A stretch of 64,000 nt of DNA, from positions 62,001 to 126,000 of IMG/VR virus record IMGVR_UViG_3300042465_005589. One strand, given 5' to 3'. Under the pieces are notes generated by a model. The model saw only the letters and a list, made by a program, of their open reading frames with translations, ran no database searches and was not told the origin of the DNA. The first letter of the stretch is position 1, and each line of letters starts with the position of its first letter. Below are positions 2,974 through 62,879 of the stretch, piece after piece. The position numbers and the translations under genes are program-made.

Positions 2974-3121
2974 ATAAAATTTGTAAACCCTTGAGAAGGA
3001 ATCTGTGGGCGTGTATAGGATTACTTGTCTACCTTCTATCCATCCGGGTCTCTCACCCGACGAAACTTTACTACAAATAAATTCGTAGTTCCATCCCCCA
3101 CCAAATTATGGTTTACTTTTG

Positions 3122-3211
3122 TGGTATCAGATGGGCTCGAACCACCGGCACAGAGTCTTTCGTTACTCCTGCTCTACCAAAGGAGATAAATCTCCACTGA
3201 GCTATAATACC
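3122..3211 (-). ncRNA. tRNA-like RNA with hairpin inserted in D-loop and 8-nt anticodon loop
   Basis: Acceptor GGTATTA/TGATACC, T-loop GTTCGAG, D-loop insert GGAGATTTATCTCC. Confidence 0.6.
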
Positions 3212-7885: not shown

Positions 7886-8911
7886 TTACAACTTTTTAAA
7901 TTCCGGTCTTATTAGATTCCATATGATTTCAGAGTAATTTTTCTTATCAAACATTCTAAACAGAATCCCTGACATATGTTTAGGTTGAGTGAATACCCAC
8001 TCAGCAAACTCTTTTCTATCTTCTATGGGTTCTTTATCGTTATATTTACCATACATCATACCATCAAACTTTTTACCAGCATCCTCAGATATTTGGAAAT
8101 GACTATATCTTAAATCTCTAACATAAGATTTAATTTTATTGTAAAATTCGTCTGGAACATCTTTTAATATTTCCATAACATCCTCACCATTTTTCAAATA
8201 CTCCCAAACTCCGGTTGTGGTAACATTGGTCATAATTTTGTGAAGACGAAGATACTCAACACCTTTAACTTTAACTCTATCCCCATTGGAGAACTTCACC
8301 ACAAACCCTTCTTGGTCGTTTTTAACCATTTCTTTGAGTTGTTTGTAGTCGTTTATACCATCGTATTTTTTAACCACATCAAACCCGTATTCTCTCCACA
8401 TTTCCACATCATATTCTTTACCATTCTTATCAAAGGTTCCCAATAGGACTAACCCTTCATAATCACCGTAATCTACTACCACGCGATTCTGAGGAAATAA
8501 AATTTCAAAACAAAAAGTCAGATGTCTGAACATTATATCGGTGTTGTATTTTTTAAGTAATTCTCTACCCTTAATTGCTTGGTCTGAACCAAATGACCCA
8601 CGAGTCGCTAATATCCATTGTCCTTCGTACCAAAAAACTATTAAAAGTGAGCCATCCATTTTTTCATACACCTCAAAGTTTTCAGTTGGTTCAAATTTTC
8701 CTTCCTCTATGTTGAAGAATTTATCAAAAGGTTTTGCTACGATATCTCCGGTGTGGTCGGTAACTAAACCTCTACACATCAAAAGAGTTTCGTCCCACAA
8801 ATTTTCATACTGGACTTTTTCGCTATAGTTCCATATAGTTAATGGGAGGTATGGATGTACTTGTTTGTAAAGTAATCCGTCTTCGTAATATTTGTTTAGT
8901 TTTTCTATCAT
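7886..8911 (-). CDS. RNA ligase, T4 Rnl1 family
   Basis: KPFDKFFN, YEKMDGS, FEIL, EGFVV, VKVK nucleotidyltransferase motifs. Confidence 0.92.
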   Translation of the reverse strand: MIEKLNKYYEDGLLYKQVHPYLPLTIWNYSEKVQYENLWDETLLMCRGLVTDHTGDIVAKPFDKFFNIEEGKFEPTENFEVYEKMDGSLLIVFWYEGQWILATRGSFGSDQAIKGRELLKKYNTDIMFRHLTFCFEILFPQNRVVVDYGDYEGLVLLGTFDKNGKEYDVEMWREYGFDVVKKYDGINDYKQLKEMVKNDQEGFVVKFSNGDRVKVKGVEYLRLHKIMTNVTTTGVWEYLKNGEDVMEILKDVPDEFYNKIKSYVRDLRYSHFQISEDAGKKFDGMMYGKYNDKEPIEDRKEFAEWVFTQPKHMSGILFRMFDKKNYSEIIWNLIRPEFKKL

Positions 8912-14780: not shown

Positions 14781-14847
14781 AAATTTTAGCTAATAGCTAA
14801 AACTATGTGGAGTTGGGTTGGTTGTTTTTCATATTAATAAATATTAG

Positions 14848-15123: not shown

Positions 15124-15144
15124 TGAGTATCTCTATCTCAATTG

Positions 15145-15238
15145 TAGTCAGGAGAGGAATCGAACCTCTCTACAGGGTGCTACCCGTCATCCGTGACCTT
15201 CCATCGGACTCGAACCGACCTTGTATCCAACCTGACTA
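15145..15238 (-). ncRNA. tRNA shell 4 with a nested second T-arm
   Basis: AGTCAGG acceptor; internal TCGGTTCGAGTCCGA. Confidence 0.6.
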
Positions 15239-24833: not shown

Positions 24834-24910
24834 AATTTTACCCCACTTCACCGGCTTAACGGACCGGCTGCCATATGGGAGTGGGGGTTTCCTGTTGTAT
24901 CAGGACTCCG

Positions 24911-24982
24911 CGGACTTGGGGAATCACGATATCCCGACCCTTCGCTTAACAGGCGAACGCTCTTCCTCTGAGCTACAAGTCC
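24911..24982 (-). tRNA. tRNA-Asn (GTT), atypical T-loop
   Basis: CT-GTT-AA loop, G73. Confidence 0.75.
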
Positions 24983-34020: not shown

Positions 34021-35241
34021 TTAAAGTTCAATATCGTCACCCACATTAGGGTCTAAATCGTCTTGTTTTATTTGAGTAACTTTACTCCACCCTTTAGATG
34101 ATGTATATTGACCACCATCTTCGGTATTAATTACCATTTGATTACCATCACATTTCCAAGTCCCATTTAAAATAGTTCCATCTTCAAACTCATAGATAAA
34201 TTTTAAATTTTTATAAAAATTCAACGAATCTTTACCACTTGTTGATTTAAAAGATATTTTATTAGTTTGTGTTGTAGGTATATTCTTTCCAAAACCGTTA
34301 AAACAAGAATAATCATTTGTCCAAGTAGGTTTAGAAGATTCTGTTGTTGATGGTGCTGGTGGTGGAATCACCGGTGTTGATTGACCACATTCTTTTTTAG
34401 CATTAGGGAATCTTTTATCCAAGTCTCTAATTGCGTTAGGAAGATTTTTTAATGATTTCCAATCAGTAATTGATTTACCTTTTGTTTCCCATTCACAGTC
34501 ATTTGATAATCTATATTGATAAGGGTCTCCTGGTGTTGTATATATTTTTTTATCACTAGTTGATGTACTTGAGGATGATAATGAACCTAAATTACTTTTT
34601 CCGGTATTATCCCACCCAAATTGTTTGGTATATTCATAACCATCTTCTGTTTTTATATATAATTTACCTGAAACACATTTCCATTTTCCATTTAATATAG
34701 CTTTAACTTCATTTTCATAAACAAATTTTCCGTCTTTATAAAAATATAAATTATCTTCACCATCTTGAGTTTTAACAACAACTTTATCATCACTATCACT
34801 TCTATTAATATTACCTATCTCGTTAATGCAAGGGTTATCTTTTACCCAATCAGGTAAAGTTGTCATGTCTTCCCACCAATTAGATAAACGGTCTCTAATA
34901 TCACGATACCATACATTACCTTCTTTCCATACTTTTTTACCGGCATCTTTCAATTTCTCAAGAAGAGCTGCGTCCGTAACCTTTTCCCAAAATATTCTTT
35001 CAATATCAGAAACGTTTGGAATTGGGTCCGGAGTTGGAGGTGCAGGTGTCGGAGGTGCAGGTGTCGGTGGAGATGGCGTTGGAGGAGCTGGTGTTGGTGT
35101 TGTAATTTTAGGTTTATACCATTTACCATCACTACTAACATCATATTTAGACTTATCTATCTTACCAATTAAGGGTGGTGGAACTGCAGTCCAATCACCA
35201 CTATTGTCAGGTTGTTCTAATATAAGGGAATTTCTTTTCAT
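34021..35241 (-). CDS. Leader-bearing protein with Pro-rich repeats and a duplicated ~70-aa module
   Basis: PTPAPP repeats; two FYK..KF.YE..NG.WKC..TEDG..Y...GW modules. Confidence 0.8.
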   Translation of the reverse strand: MKRNSLILEQPDNSGDWTAVPPPLIGKIDKSKYDVSSDGKWYKPKITTPTPAPPTPSPPTPAPPTPAPPTPDPIPNVSDIERIFWEKVTDAALLEKLKDAGKKVWKEGNVWYRDIRDRLSNWWEDMTTLPDWVKDNPCINEIGNINRSDSDDKVVVKTQDGEDNLYFYKDGKFVYENEVKAILNGKWKCVSGKLYIKTEDGYEYTKQFGWDNTGKSNLGSLSSSSTSTSDKKIYTTPGDPYQYRLSNDCEWETKGKSITDWKSLKNLPNAIRDLDKRFPNAKKECGQSTPVIPPPAPSTTESSKPTWTNDYSCFNGFGKNIPTTQTNKISFKSTSGKDSLNFYKNLKFIYEFEDGTILNGTWKCDGNQMVINTEDGGQYTSSKGWSKVTQIKQDDLDPNVGDDIEL

Positions 35242-35264
35242 ATTACATAAATATCAATAAAATA

Positions 35265-50681: not shown

Positions 50682-52550
50682 TTATTCAGGTTTAACTTCT
50701 TCAAACTCTACATCTGAAGCGTTTATATCTGATTCCGGTGTCTCACTCTCATTTACACTATTGTATAATTCCTGTGTGATGGTTTGGAACTTTTGAGTAA
50801 GTTCTTCCATAATCGTTTTAACATTTTCCACATCTTTATTAGAATGAGATTCTTTCAAAGTATCAAGAATAGTTGTTATTTCTGTTTTTTGTTCTTCAGA
50901 AATCTTATCCTCTAAATCCGTTAAAGATTTACCTGTTTGGAATATCAGGTTGTCAGCAGAGTTTAATGTATCCACATCTTCTTTAACTTTTTTGTCCGCT
51001 TCAGCATTTTCTTCAGCTTCAGCCTTCATTCTTTCAATGTCTTCTTGAGATAGTCCCGTTGAACCCTCAATTCTAATTGATTGTGTTTTGTTTGTTGCTT
51101 TGTCAACCGCAGATACGTTGATGATACCATTCGCATCAATATCAAAGATAACCTCAATCTGAGGAACACCTCTCATCGATGGTGGTAAACCATCTAAATG
51201 GAATCTTCCCATCGTTCTGTTGTCTTTCGCCATTGGTCTCTCCCCTTGTAAGACGTGAATCTCCACAGAAGGTTGATTATCAACAGCCGTTGAGAAAACT
51301 TGTGACTTTTTGGTTGGGATTGTGGTATTTGATTCAATAAGTCGAGTTAAAATCCCACCCATCGTTTCAATACCTAATGAAAGTGGTGTTACGTCTAATA
51401 ACAACACGTCTTTCACATCACCAGCCAATACACCCCCTTGAATAGCCGCTCCTAACGCAACTACTTCATCCGGATTAACACCTTTTGATGGTTCTTTACC
51501 AAAGAACTTCTTAACCGCCTCTTGTATTGCTGGGATTCTTGTTGTTCCACCAACAAGGATAACCTCATCAATATCGGAAATCTTAAGTTTCGCGTTTTTC
51601 AATGCCGTTTTACAAGGGTCAATCGTTCTTTTGATTAAATCAGTAGCAAGTTGTTCAAACTTAGCTCTTGATAAAGTTTTAACCAAGTGTTTTGGTCCGG
51701 TCGCATCAGCACTTAAATAAGGTAAGTTGATTTCTGTCTGAGGAGATGAAGATAATTCAACCTTCGCTTTCTCAGCACCTTCTCTTAACCTTTGTAATGC
51801 CATTGCGTCTTTTGAGATGTCTATACCACCATTATCGTTCTTAAATTCTTCAACCAAGTAATCGATAATGACTCTGTCAAAGTCGTCCCCTCCTAAGTGA
51901 GTGTCTCCATCGGTAGATAATACCTCAAACACACCTCCACCTAAGTCAAGAATAGACACGTCGTGAGTTCCCCCTCCGCAGTCAAACACAACAATTTTAC
52001 TATCACCCTTTTTGTCAAGACCGTACGCAAGAGCCGCCGCGGTTGGTTCGTTGATAATACGACGAACATTTAATCCGGCAATTTCACCCGCCTCTTTTGT
52101 AGCCTGACGTTGGGCGTCGTTAAAGTAAGCTGGAACGGTGATTACCGCATCAGTTACTGATTCACCCAAATAATCTTCAGCAGTTTGTTTCATCTTTTGT
52201 AAGATGATTGCCGATAATTCTTGTGGTGAGTATTTTCTATCATCAATTTGAACTCTTGGTTGTGAGTTTTCATTTACAACTGAGTAAGGAACTTTTCCAA
52301 TTTCGTTTTTACTCTCGTTATAGGTGGAACCCATAAATCGTTTAATTGATGATATTGTTTTAGTCGGATTGGTTACCGCCTGTCTTTTTGCCGGGTCACC
52401 AACTTTTCTTTCTCCTTCGTTGATGAAACCGATGATTGAAGGTGTTGTTCTTTTACCTTCTGAATTTGCTATTACAACAGGTTCGTTCCCCTCCATTACA
52501 GAGACACACGAGTTTGTTGTTCCTAAGTCAATTCCAATAATTTTTCCCAT
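50682..52550 (-). CDS. dnaK: Chaperone DnaK (Hsp70)
   Basis: [30 protein letters not shown]; full length. Confidence 0.98.
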
Positions 52551-55660: not shown

Positions 55661-56458
55661 TTATTTTAATAAGTTATAATATTCTTTGAAGTGTTTGAGT
55701 CTATCAGGTAATCCAATAGTTCCCCCGTTTACTCTTTTAGTTACCTCAGTTACTGTGGTATCATCCGCCCCTTTATCACAAATAGACCATAGTTTATTTG
55801 AGTCAAAGAAGAATGCCGCTGACGCCAATGGATATTTTGTAGCGACCAAATCAGGGTTTGTGATAGTATCTTCTCCGATGAATTTTGCGAAGTTTTTATA
55901 GTTGTCTTTACCAGTTAATTGAATATATCCACGTCCTCTAAATTTGAAACCCTCTTTTGTTGATTCATCCCCATTACCCATTCTACCACCATATACTTTT
56001 GACGCAATTTTTTCAGGGTTTCTTGCGTAAGATTCTGATAAGTTACCAGGAAAGTATTTTGGGAATATCTTTTTAAGACCATCCGCAGAATAGTTAACAT
56101 TTTCGGAAACCAATTTAAATCCTCCTGATTCGTGACCACATTGGGATAAGAAGTGAGCCAATCTTAATGGTGTTGTAATATTGAATTTTTTTGCCGTATC
56201 CGGAATCTGAGCAATTACTGAATCAGGGACATGACCTTTTAAATTTTCTAATTTAAAGATTCCTTTAATAACTTCACCCAAAAACATTTTTTCCCATGTC
56301 TCATCACCAATAACCCCATCTGACGTTAATCCATTTTTAGTTTGCCATTCTTTAACTAATTTTTCGGTACCAACACCAAAATCACCATCAACCACAGTAC
56401 CTAATTTTGTTTGTAGTTTTTTCACATCTTCCCCTTTTGACCCAACTTTCAATAACAT
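55661..56458 (-). CDS. Endolysin: peptidoglycan-binding domain plus GH19 muramidase
   Basis: LKVGSKGEDVKKLQ..DGDFG; HESGGF, FRGRGYIQLTGKDNY, VNGG. Confidence 0.93.
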   Translation of the reverse strand: MLLKVGSKGEDVKKLQTKLGTVVDGDFGVGTEKLVKEWQTKNGLTSDGVIGDETWEKMFLGEVIKGIFKLENLKGHVPDSVIAQIPDTAKKFNITTPLRLAHFLSQCGHESGGFKLVSENVNYSADGLKKIFPKYFPGNLSESYARNPEKIASKVYGGRMGNGDESTKEGFKFRGRGYIQLTGKDNYKNFAKFIGEDTITNPDLVATKYPLASAAFFFDSNKLWSICDKGADDTTVTEVTKRVNGGTIGLPDRLKHFKEYYNLLK

Positions 56459-57011: not shown

Positions 57012-57824
57012 CTACTTATTTAATAAATCCCAAGCTCTTGCCAATCTTGTTAAACCAATACCAGCACCAAATCTTGGAAAGAAGTCCAAAGATAAGAATT
57101 CTTCCAATTCTTTTTCCACTCTATCTTTTCCAAATAACTCAAATAACTTGGAAGAATACCCACCACCTTCGATTGAGTAGAACATCTCTCTCATTTTAAC
57201 AACATCACAACTTCTCTCAGCAGAACCAATAGTTTCTTGACCAAAAAGGATTACGTCAACCTTATTGAAGATGTTGTCTGAATCGTGTTTCATATTCCAA
57301 AATGGGTTTGTTCTAATTGGAAAGTTTTGTAATGATATAACCTCACTTTTTTCTTTCCACATTCTTGATTCGTGTTCATCTTCTAAAATAGAAACATCTC
57401 CATATTCTTTACAAACTTGTTCGTAATCTACGGGAACTGGTTCTGAGAAACCTAAATATTGTAATAATTCACGTTCTAATACAAGTAAATGAAGCATACC
57501 ACCCTTTGATTCAAATTCAAACATTGGAAAGATTAACTCGTGACGACCCGGAATTGGATTTTTCTCTTCTCTATATGATGTTGAAATACAGAACACTCCA
57601 TCCCACTCAGGATTCTTCAATAATTCCAATTCTAACCACATTTGTCCTGTTTGTGGTAATGGCCAAATTTCACCCCCATATTCAAAGGTTTTTACTGAAT
57701 GTGGGTTTTCACAAGCAGCTAAAATAGATAATCTTGATTGAGTTGGGACCTCAATAAAATTCTTACTAACGAAGAATGTTCTTAATTTTTGTACCAGTTC
57801 GTGGTAAGTTTTTGTGTTTTTCAT
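57012..57824 (-). CDS. Class II aaRS-like catalytic domain lacking anticodon domain (AsnRS2/archaeal-type asparagine synthetase-like)
   Basis: LPQTGQ, STSYREE..RH..FPMFEFE, ETIGSAER, GAGIGLTRL. Confidence 0.82.
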   Translation of the reverse strand: MKNTKTYHELVQKLRTFFVSKNFIEVPTQSRLSILAACENPHSVKTFEYGGEIWPLPQTGQMWLELELLKNPEWDGVFCISTSYREEKNPIPGRHELIFPMFEFESKGGMLHLLVLERELLQYLGFSEPVPVDYEQVCKEYGDVSILEDEHESRMWKEKSEVISLQNFPIRTNPFWNMKHDSDNIFNKVDVILFGQETIGSAERSCDVVKMREMFYSIEGGGYSSKLFELFGKDRVEKELEEFLSLDFFPRFGAGIGLTRLARAWDLLNK

Positions 57825-57861
57825 TGTTTTAATATTTAATTTTTATTGTTTACGTATGGGC

Positions 57862-57942
57862 AAAAAAAAGTCCCTAAAATAAAATAGGGACTTACATTTA
57901 AGTAATATAGTTGTTCGGCATGTATAATTCATATCTCTTCAT
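57862..57942 (-). promoter_or_regulatory. Candidate leader-peptide attenuator (MKRYELYMPNNYIT plus terminator)
   Basis: 14-aa uORF 57898-57942, hairpin AAGTCCCTA/TAGGGACTT plus T8. Confidence 0.5.
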
Positions 57943-58017
57943 TGGTAATAAATATACTATATTAAGATAAAAAATCAATAAGCTTTACATTTTAATATTT
58001 GAGAATATATTTATAGT

Positions 58018-58203
58018 ATGAACGATGAACAAAAAGCCCAATTGTATAGCCAACTAACATATAATTATGATAGATTAGCTAATGAAATCTCCTCAATTAA
58101 AGGTGAGAGTATTGATTTAAATCAACCACAAAAAGAAAGAATTCAAAAACTTCAGGTTGAACAGCATAAAATTATGAGTCGAGTTCAACAATTAATGAAT
58201 TAG
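58018..58203 (+). CDS. Hypothetical coiled-coil protein
   Basis: 61-aa ORF after TATTTATA. Confidence 0.7.
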   Translation: MNDEQKAQLYSQLTYNYDRLANEISSIKGESIDLNQPQKERIQKLQVEQHKIMSRVQQLMN

Positions 58204-58231: not shown

Positions 58232-58564
58232 ATGTTATTAGCAAAAATTAATCCATCAGCAGAAAAAATTTCAGAAATTACACCATTTAGTTCGGTAACT
58301 ATATCTTTAGATTATATGACCGCAATTGCAAGACCGTATGTAGCAGGAGCTACTCAAACAAATTTCTCAATTGAATTTGGTGCTATTACTAAAGTTGACG
58401 GTGTTCCTACATCATTTCGAGCTCAAAATCAAAGTAACCTAACATTAACCTCAGAAGAATTATCTTCATGGGGAACTAACGACGAAGTTTTATTAACTAT
58501 CATAGCTAGTAAATTAGGTGTTGCGATTGAAGGTTACGAAAACGTAGACAACGGAAATTTCTAA
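58232..58564 (+). CDS. Hypothetical protein
   Basis: 110-aa ORF. Confidence 0.72.
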   Translation: MLLAKINPSAEKISEITPFSSVTISLDYMTAIARPYVAGATQTNFSIEFGAITKVDGVPTSFRAQNQSNLTLTSEELSSWGTNDEVLLTIIASKLGVAIEGYENVDNGNF

Positions 58565-58595: not shown

Positions 58596-59288
58596 TTACA
58601 CAAACTCTACTTCGTTTGTATCCGGATTCCAATCAACGGTTAATGGTTTTTGAGTATATATGTATCTCTCATCTAAAACCGCAGTGTTAAAGTGGTGTGT
58701 GTCTCCTTTTCTAACGTAACCATATCCGGTGTGGATGTGACCAACATTATGAAGTTTAACATTCAATCTCTCTAATCTTTCAGTCAATAACTCACAACCC
58801 AAATTATCGTATCTTCTACCATCAACGGTGTCTAATATTCCAAATGCCGGACAGTGAGTAAGTAAGATGTCAGTATCATCAGGGATTCCTTCCCATTTAC
58901 CCGCCAATCCCATACCATTTTTAGGTAAGTTAAACGCCCATCCGTGAAATTCAGGTTGCCAAGGACTACCGTAGATTTTTACTTCTCTTTCGTCACCAAT
59001 TTGGATTTTGAATTCACTATCTTGAAGATATGTGATACCGGTGTAGAAATCTAATATTTCTTTTACCTTATCAACATTATCTTGAAAACCCCAATCGTGA
59101 TTTCCGGCTACGAATACCTTGTGAGTATAACCTTTAATGTCGTTAAACCATTTACAGAACTCTCTGATTTCGTGTTCGTAACCCATAGATGATATATCAC
59201 CACTATGGACTAGTAAGTCACCACCAGGTAAGTCGGCAGTTATTTGTTTGTGTTTGTTGTGTGTGTCACTTATTAATGTTATTTTCAT
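58596..59288 (-). CDS. Metallophosphoesterase (MPPED/239FB-like)
   Basis: ISDTH, HSGD, AGNHD, THCP, GHIH. Confidence 0.92.
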   Translation of the reverse strand: MKITLISDTHNKHKQITADLPGGDLLVHSGDISSMGYEHEIREFCKWFNDIKGYTHKVFVAGNHDWGFQDNVDKVKEILDFYTGITYLQDSEFKIQIGDEREVKIYGSPWQPEFHGWAFNLPKNGMGLAGKWEGIPDDTDILLTHCPAFGILDTVDGRRYDNLGCELLTERLERLNVKLHNVGHIHTGYGYVRKGDTHHFNTAVLDERYIYTQKPLTVDWNPDTNEVEFV

Positions 59289-62438: not shown

Positions 62439-62828
62439 TTAATCATACATTTTATCAGCATCTTTCGGGTGCGATTTTTCGTATTTTTTAATTATTGAAC
62501 CGGACTTTGCGTTAGCCTCATCTTCATTTTTACCACCAATATCACCACCTCTATCTCTATTGAGAATTGTTCGTTGATATTCATGAATCCACTCATGAGT
62601 TAATGTTCTTAAAATATCGCGATTCATTCTCCCTTTAGATAAGACGAATATTTCACTATTGTCATTTCTAAGACCTGTAGTCATATTTGTGTCTCTCTTA
62701 CCTACAAAAATAATGGTTAAGTCTCTTTTCAAGGGGCATTCTGTTTGCAAGTAACTAATGAAATTATTAAAAAATTTAAAATTATCTTTAGGTATATCAG
62801 AATTAATATGTTTAATTGTAATTTTCAT
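62439..62828 (-). CDS. HExxH zincin-like protein
   Basis: LTHEWIHEYQ..EDEAN. Confidence 0.68.
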   Translation of the reverse strand: MKITIKHINSDIPKDNFKFFNNFISYLQTECPLKRDLTIIFVGKRDTNMTTGLRNDNSEIFVLSKGRMNRDILRTLTHEWIHEYQRTILNRDRGGDIGGKNEDEANAKSGSIIKKYEKSHPKDADKMYD

Positions 62829-62879
62829 ATTTTATAAATATATCACAATTGCTAAGTATTTATATATAAAAGATTAAAC

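Follow-up and report, generated by a model that had tools for sequence, protein, structure and literature searches.

Does the tiny open reading frame that precedes an asparaginyl-tRNA-synthetase-like gene in a lake-water jumbo phage, together with the terminator that follows it, form a switch that responds to asparagine (Asn) decoding, or is it a chance pattern in AT-rich DNA? We addressed this question in a 64,000-nt stretch of IMG/VR contig 3300042465_005589 (hereafter, the window). A sequence-only reading of the window had described a TATTTAT motif, a 14-codon ORF with two adjacent Asn codons, a 9-bp hairpin with a T-run and an aaRS-like gene, and had proposed that the phage senses the supply of Asn-tRNA to control an asparagine-synthetase-like gene, while noting that there were only two Asn codons and no clear antiterminator. 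We first asked whether these elements are present, then whether they are conserved beyond chance in related loci, and finally which mechanism best accounts for them.

Layout of the locus

All of the elements described in the sequence-only reading were found where it had placed them, and the observation is confirmed (Table 1). The genes upstream lie on the opposite strand; the terminator is therefore situated inside a divergent promoter region, between a promoter-like motif and a gene start, which is an odd place for an ordinary end-of-gene terminator. In this window alone, however, two Asn codons in 14 are not significant, and the terminator is one of 35 terminator-like sites in 64 kb, although it is the only one with a motif-led mini-ORF and the only one followed by GCCC.

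Table 1. Features of the leader, the downstream gene and other window features referred to in the text
Feature	Coordinates	Strand	Description
Promoter-like motif TATATTTAT	57956-57948	minus	5 nt upstream of the mini-ORF ATG; TATTTAT at 57955-57949
Leader mini-ORF MKRYELYMPNNYIT	57942-57898	minus	14 codons plus stop; ATG at 57942-57940, stop at 57900-57898
Tandem Asn codons	57915-57910	minus	AAC AAC; first bases 22 and 19 nt upstream of the stem
Terminator hairpin	57893-57868	minus	4 nt after the stop; 9-bp stem, 8-nt loop, -12.8 kcal/mol
T8 run (U-tract)	57869-57862	minus	First two T can pair with the AA at the base of the stem
GCCC	57861-57858	minus	Directly after the U-tract
A-rich spacer	57857-57825	minus	33 nt (37 nt counted from the end of the U-tract); no Shine-Dalgarno sequence or promoter motif
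AsnRS-like gene	57824-57012	minus	270 aa; class IIb aaRS catalytic core without an anticodon-binding domain
Divergent 61-aa gene	58018-58203	plus	Starts 3-6 nt after a motif copy
Motif copy of the 61-aa gene	58006-58014
Second upstream gene	58232-58564	plus
406-aa gene	start at 35241		Starts 3-6 nt after a motif copy
129-aa gene	start at 62828		Starts 3-6 nt after a motif copy
tRNA-Asn	24910-24982		Normal, 73 nt

The motif behaves as a promoter-like signal of this phage and points at the mini-ORF. In the window, 15 of 21 intergenic ATATTTAT lie 4-22 nt upstream of an ATG on the same strand, and in intergenic regions between co-oriented genes the motif follows the gene direction 13 times against 3. 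Several long genes start 3-6 nt after the motif, so the mini-ORF ATG stands where real start codons stand. As the reverse complement of the motif resembles TATAAATA, we considered whether it is a T4-type late promoter on the other strand; this was rejected because of the orientation and spacing just described, and the divergent 61-aa gene has its own copy. Only six of 84 genes have a Shine-Dalgarno-like 4-mer, and A peaks at -3 and at -11 to -13, which fits the way translation is initiated in Bacteroidota (PMC6847099). The motif also resembles the Bacteroidota -7 box, TAnnTTTG. A Bacteroidota host, and transcription start sites at or just before the ATG, are inferences.

Conservation of the leader in related loci

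More than 590 viral contigs encode a homolog of the gene. Among the 80 best loci (loci are labelled L with a number) there are 62 distinct upstream regions, of which about 44 carry a perfect 7-10 bp hairpin followed by T7-T10, mostly then GCCC. About 17 diverged lineages with unrelated mini-ORF sequences keep the full order of motif, 5-10 nt, ATG, a short ORF of 8-26 codons (41-43 in L010 and L023, which read through the hairpin) and hairpin; examples of the encoded peptides are MHRKKQNKNNIIM, MKNNKLNNK, MIKLQNNNGDSNPF, MNTRTKSNNNNHSES and MENNITNNNYLLNKK. GCCC is present in most lineages. Some loci (L015, L031, L034) have a longer upstream ORF in place of the mini-ORF, and a second clade of homologs has a terminator followed by a TATATATA box and a different 5' leader. 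A query at 46% identity yielded 13 loci, only one of which (L086) carries the T8-GCCC leader, whereas those from GC-rich phages and giant-virus bins do not; a query at 37% identity found nothing.

The stems covary: there are 31 distinct perfect hairpins at the same place in relatives, with 3-5 pair types at each stem position. MAFFT could not put stems with different loop lengths in register, and pairs were therefore counted from the stem ends; as the search that found these stems required perfect pairing, the absence of mismatches is by construction.

The leader travels with the gene. Flanking genes are mostly unrelated between lineages, and the gene often lies alone between opposite-strand genes, so that the motif before the mini-ORF is its only visible promoter. 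In L038, L042, L051 and L053 only 10-13 nt separate the U-tract from the gene ATG, which leaves no room for a separate promoter. The string T8GCCCATACGT occurs 33 times in IMG/VR; 32 sites are followed by a family homolog, and the last is cut by a contig end.

To assess whether the mini-ORF could arise by chance, we fixed the ATG and shuffled the bases between it and the stem. The first stop is expected to fall within -25 to +12 nt of the stem start with a probability of 0.10-0.63 per lineage, or in 5.2 of 17 lineages; it does so in 16 of 17 (P < 1e-5), at -18 to +11 nt, and the seventeenth reads through the hairpin. For two lineages, the second ATG after the motif was used. In close relatives of the window, changes at Y4 (TAT/TAC), L6 (TTA/CTA), P9 (CCG/CCA) and N11 (AAC/AAT) of the mini-ORF are synonymous, whereas those at codons 2, 3, 5, 8 and 12 change the residue.

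Asparagine codons in the mini-ORF

Conservation of the Asn codons in homologs had been named beforehand as a check on the sequence-only reading. Across the 17 lineages, 59 of 243 internal codons (24%) are Asn, against 29.6 +/- 5.0 in mononucleotide and 31.1 +/- 4.9 in dinucleotide shuffles conditioned on an open frame; none of 2000 or 1000 shuffles, respectively, reaches 59. The enrichment is frame-specific, as the other two frames hold 15 and 12 AAY, and Lys is not enriched (41 observed, 48.6 expected). Runs of two or more Asn occur in 11 of 17 lineages, against three expected. By comparison, proteins encoded in the window have 6.6% Asn, and their residues 2-15 have 7.5%. Asn density also depends on position, at 11% of codons more than 35 nt before the stem, 28% at 24-35 nt, 45% at 15-23 nt, 29% at 9-14 nt, and 9% closer or inside.

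These values need to be interpreted cautiously, as lineages are related by descent and the P values overstate their independence; retention of Asn while everything else diverged is nevertheless itself the signal. Two lineages (L010, L023) have no Asn codon before the hairpin, and L032 is also among those with few or none. Further variants (L186-L208, L086, L029, L024), which are not independent of the first set, carry about 17% Asn by our count.

Search for alternative RNA structures

We next asked whether the leader could form an antiterminator. With the 3' arm removed, leader plus 5' arm plus loop folds at 0 to -7 kcal/mol in the 17 lineages, which is no better than shuffles (mean z = +0.3), and four lineages fold to 0.0 kcal/mol; the terminator hairpin alone gives -9 to -15 kcal/mol. 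The lack of a clear antiterminator noted in the sequence-only reading is thus a true absence. An Rfam scan of the leader, which would detect a T-box or other described RNA leader, gave a best hit of 21.9 bits against a gathering score of 43, to an unrelated family.

The encoded protein and its link to tRNA-Asn

The 270-aa product matches Pfam tRNA-synt_2 (E = 8.5e-13) and PHROG 29758, annotated as of unknown function. A 47-sequence profile searched against solved structures finds AsnRS at E = 3.5e-14, archaeal AspRS at 2.6e-13, archaeal AsnRS-like Asn synthetase A at 1.8e-7 (ranked 18th) and EpmA at 1e-5. The protein falls far below the curated cut-offs of all NCBIfam models examined for AsnRS, AspRS, AsnA and EpmA; for the EF-P lysine ligase EpmA/PoxA it scores 18-19 bits against 264-287. 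The AlphaFold model is confident (pLDDT 96.5). The arginines of motifs 2 and 3 and the acidic Mg/ATP residues are present, from which we infer that it is probably an active adenylate-forming enzyme. On these profile and model scores 'asparagine synthetase', as suggested in the sequence-only reading, is unproven.

The family is very large and viral, with more than 8000 clusters at 90% identity and 641 representatives at 50%. An atlas search returned only viral 'tRNA ligase' clusters, and a literature search found nothing on the family beyond a table entry with the same label.

A second, independent line of evidence ties the family to tRNA-Asn. In Prochlorococcus phages P-SSM2 and P-SSM7 the homolog, labelled 'tRNA ligase', is followed 8 nt later by an 87-88 nt tRNA with anticodon GUU, a long variable arm and a 3-bp D stem. 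Among 73 marine loci with enough downstream sequence, 70 have such a tRNA-Asn(GUU) of 83-96 nt, mostly 8-11 nt after the stop. The window phage has a normal tRNA-Asn (Table 1), and no long-arm one was found in the 157 kb of its genome examined. Two separate clades thus connect this family to Asn decoding by different means, Asn codons in the freshwater leaders and an adjacent unusual tRNA-Asn in cyanophages. This favours a role on tRNA-Asn over free Asn synthesis, although both remain inferences from sequence.

A candidate ribosome-occlusion attenuator

The layout is real, conserved and specific, and very probably not a chance pattern. The interpretation offered in the sequence-only reading is partly supported. 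The short ORF and terminator form a conserved leader that travels with the gene, Asn codons are enriched in frame in most lineages, and the gene family is tied to Asn and tRNA-Asn; the assignment as an Asn synthetase is not supported, and the sign that we prefer for the response is the opposite of the implied homeostatic logic. What the analysis itself establishes is the anatomy of the leader, its conservation, the frame- and position-specific Asn enrichment, the absence of an antiterminator and the exclusive link to this gene family, whereas the transcription start, translation of the ORF, termination at the hairpin, a response of read-through to charged tRNA, the sign of that response and the reaction of the enzyme are inferred.

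The best explanation, in our view, is a minimal leader-peptide transcription attenuator. Transcription would start at the phage motif a few bases before the ATG of a 9-26 codon ORF, which would be leaderless or nearly so and would run up to, or into, the 5' arm of an intrinsic terminator. As no alternative RNA fold exists, only the ribosome translating the mini-ORF could stop the hairpin from forming, and it could do so only sterically: the stop codon lies 0-11 nt before the stem or inside it, so that a ribosome at the end of the ORF would cover or melt the 5' arm. If the ribosome is close behind the polymerase when the U-tract is made, the polymerase would read on into the AsnRS-like gene; if it lags, the hairpin would form and a transcript of about 80 nt would end at the T-run. 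With Asn codons concentrated 9-35 nt before the stem, the speed of Asn decoding (the supply of charged tRNA-Asn) would set the read-through fraction. Published in vivo work shows that a ribosome within about 27 nt of a hairpin represses an intrinsic terminator, with termination below 10% when the stop is 5 bp away and about 90% at 28 bp (PMC4824070), and slow codons that uncouple translation from transcription are reported to raise termination (PMC5021804).

We consider an Asn-tuned ribosome-operated attenuator, of either sign, somewhat more likely than not. As to the sign, we tentatively prefer that fast Asn decoding gives read-through and that Asn-tRNA shortage gives termination, the opposite of what the sequence-only reading implied. 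Simple geometry and kinetics suggest this, as the Asn codons sit at the edge of the ribosome's reach, and no extra assumption is needed. Several points weigh against it. Twenty-four lake-water DNA runs contain the stretch and no RNA run does, so the start site, the short transcript and translation rest on sequence alone. The leader is very short (58-85 nt to the end of the U-tract), and for coupling to matter a ribosome must load very quickly or the polymerase must pause; no pause element was identified. In Flavobacterium johnsoniae most transcripts are reported to be leadered (PMC6847099), and leaderless initiation in the presumed host group is therefore not assured. The preferred sign gives positive feedback if the enzyme makes Asn or Asn-tRNA, which is unusual, and does not by itself explain why Asn codons cluster near the hairpin rather than anywhere in the ORF. 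The two lineages without an Asn codon before the hairpin (L010, L023) and the loci with a longer upstream ORF in place of the mini-ORF (L015, L031, L034) also count against it.

The strongest rival, which we nevertheless regard as unlikely, although not by a wide margin, is the same attenuator with the opposite, homeostatic sign. In this view the polymerase dwells at the U-tract/GCCC boundary, and a ribosome held at hungry Asn codons 9-23 nt before the stem keeps the hairpin from folding until the polymerase escapes, whereas a well-supplied ribosome reaches the stop codon and is released, so that the hairpin folds. This explains why Asn codons peak inside the zone from which a ribosome can repress a terminator and fall to background beyond 35 nt, and it makes physiological sense for an enzyme tied to Asn or tRNA-Asn; the conserved GCCC could prolong the dwell. 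However, it needs the polymerase to wait for ribosome arrival and release, and no pause signal was shown. In short leaders of the L038 type the stop codon lies about 30 nt before the release site, by our geometry, and a coupled ribosome can barely reach it before the decision is made; moreover, the first Asn codon met is usually 22-36 nt from the stem, at or beyond the repression limit.

Somewhat less likely still is an unregulated device, in which the mini-ORF and a leaky terminator only set a low, fixed expression level or insulate the gene, and Asn richness is a by-product of a need for A-rich, unstructured, non-poly(A) sequence after a leaderless start. The leaders are 53% A and less structured than shuffles, (AAT)n-like runs can be read only as Asn or Ile in an open frame, and some lineages have few or no Asn codons. 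Against this, Asn is doubled relative to composition-matched open shuffles while Lys is not enriched, AAC contributes 18 of the 59 Asn codons, real genes that start at the same distance from the same motif have 7.5% Asn in their first residues, and the positional peak is not expected from composition.

We regard as very unlikely that the locus comprises two separate units, a tiny gene (peptide or small RNA) with its own terminator and an aaRS-like gene transcribed from an unrecognised promoter in the spacer. The leader of the second clade of homologs is consistent with such a reading, and the conserved GCCC-ATACGT could be part of an unknown promoter; however, the U-tract lies too near the ATG in four lineages, the spacer contains no phage promoter motif, the peptide sequence is not conserved across lineages, the mini-ORF and terminator were never found apart from this gene, and no Rfam family matches. 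A classical trp/his-type attenuator with alternative antiterminator and pause hairpins, although suggested by a short ORF with cognate codons before a terminator, is all but excluded by the folding results.

Leader-peptide attenuation is textbook biology for bacterial amino-acid operons, but our literature searches found no described case for asparagine and none in a phage. It is possible, although doubtful on present evidence, that this is the first asparagine-responsive leader-peptide attenuator and the first such device described in a phage, a stripped-down form in which a leaderless mini-ORF and one hairpin are the whole switch, controlling a virus-specific AsnRS-core family that in marine cyanophages is paired with its own long-arm tRNA(GUU); the family would then be a phage-encoded synthetase that works on tRNA-Asn without reading the anticodon. 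A switch without alternative RNA folds would be a clean natural system for studying how a ribosome alone decides an intrinsic terminator, and a compact part for synthetic biology in hosts that lack Shine-Dalgarno sequences. It also flags an abundant, uncharacterised viral enzyme family, and suggests that AT-rich phages may manage the supply of one particular charged tRNA during infection.

Comparison with known systems

The archaeal AsnRS-like asparagine synthetase A (PDB 3P8T, 1NNH) and bacterial AsnA share with the phage protein a class IIb catalytic core of about 270-295 aa without an anticodon-binding domain, and Foldseek gives a TM-score by query of 0.72-0.74. They differ in the weaker profile match and in the NCBIfam AsnA models (NF005055 / NF005053), which score 14-17 bits against cut-offs of 322-389; in addition, the phage family is viral and in cyanophages is linked to a tRNA gene. 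The catalytic domains of AsnRS and archaeal-type AspRS are the best sequence and fold matches (Foldseek TM 0.73-0.79 for AspRS/AsnRS). Motif 2 (SYREE...RHE) and motif 3 (GAGIGLTR) are present, and at two pocket positions, which bear on substrate choice, the family reads QTGQMWLE and FEFE (Leu64-Glu65 and Glu103) like AsnRS (QSSQLYLE, VEAE), not AspRS (QSPQLYKQ, DSEM), which has Lys-Gln and Asp there. This comparison does not include archaeal AsnA, as none of the control genomes scored above the cut-off for that family. The phage protein has no OB-fold anticodon-binding domain, its 270 aa align to the catalytic domain only, and it scores 15-16 bits against cut-offs of 343-414 for AsnRS (TIGR00457 / NF003037).

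The pheST (pheM leader) attenuator of Escherichia coli and the trp/his/leu/thr leader-peptide attenuators share with this locus a promoter, a short ORF enriched in codons cognate to the controlled function, and an intrinsic terminator upstream of the gene, and in pheST the controlled gene is itself an aminoacyl-tRNA synthetase; a theory of regulatory codons has been presented (PMC1183508). The phage leader differs in that it shows no antiterminator or pause hairpin, its ORF starts 5-10 nt after the promoter motif, the amino acid is Asn, it sits in a phage, and the sign of the response may be inverted. In the pyrBI and pyrE attenuators, which depend on coupling-dependent antitermination, the translating ribosome itself blocks the terminator hairpin, the leader ORF ends at or inside the hairpin, and no alternative RNA structure is needed (discussed in PMC4824070); the phage leader likewise has an ORF that ends next to or inside the hairpin and no antiterminator. 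There, however, the signal is UTP-sensitive polymerase pausing rather than codon supply, and no pause sites were identified here, where the frame-specific Asn enrichment points instead to decoding speed.

Leader and start signals

Across the window, the promoter-like motif (T)ATATTTAT lies 3-22 nt before start codons. Genes almost never have Shine-Dalgarno sequences, and A is enriched at -3 and at -11 to -13; this suggests a Bacteroidota host and very short or absent mRNA leaders. A second Asn-rich mini-ORF (MKNNQPNST) starts 4 nt after the same motif, inside the tRNA island, and is followed by an AT-rich hairpin and an ORF of about 80 aa.

The GCCC that directly follows the U-tract of the leader is conserved in this leader, at the same place in most related loci, and is absent from the other 34 terminator-like sites of the window; a subclade has ATGCTT instead. 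A second clade of homologs, represented by nine of the related loci (L035, L039, L048, L059, L061, L063, L069, L073 and L074), has a different leader about 100 nt upstream of the gene start, which consists of a terminator, a TATATATA(T/C) box, a hairpin of varying sequence, and then A10 and TTTCNT directly before the ATG. Homologs of the aaRS core also occur, without the leader, in contigs labelled as giant-virus bins (GVMAG; loci L091 and L094).

Positions of further features in the window and in two cyanophage relatives
Feature	Position	Strand
tRNA genes (23)	window 3121-25996	-
tRNA-Thr(GGU), unusually long call (91 nt)	window 3121-3211	-
tRNA-Pro(UGG), unusually long call (94 nt)	window 15144-15237	-
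T4-type RNA ligase	window 7886-8911	-
Second Asn-rich mini-ORF	window 14803-14832	-
Promoter-like motif, example	window 35247-35254	-
Promoter-like motif, example	window 58006-58014	+
Promoter-like motif, example	window 62834-62842	-
Full-length Hsp70/DnaK (E 2e-256)	window 50682-52550	-
Endolysin with a peptidoglycan-binding domain	window 55661-56458	-
GCCC directly after the U-tract	window 57858-57861	
Two-way terminator	window 58570-58594	
Gene convergent on the two-way terminator	window 58232-58564	+
Gene convergent on the two-way terminator	window 58596-59288	-
tRNA with anticodon GUU, P-SSM2	L081:1378-1465	
tRNA with anticodon GUU, P-SSM7	L082:946-1032	

Gene content and tRNA genes

The phage encodes a full-length Hsp70/DnaK, a T4-type RNA ligase and an endolysin with a peptidoglycan-binding domain. 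The two-way terminator, a GC-rich stem with T runs on both strands, lies between two convergent genes. The tRNA genes of the window are all on the minus strand.

In marine cyanophage relatives (P-SSM2, P-SSM7 and loci L096-L175), the aaRS-core gene is followed, mostly 8-11 nt after its stop, by an 83-96 nt tRNA with anticodon GUU, a long variable arm and a 3-bp D stem. This arrangement holds for 70 of 73 loci. It looks like a dedicated enzyme/tRNA pair.
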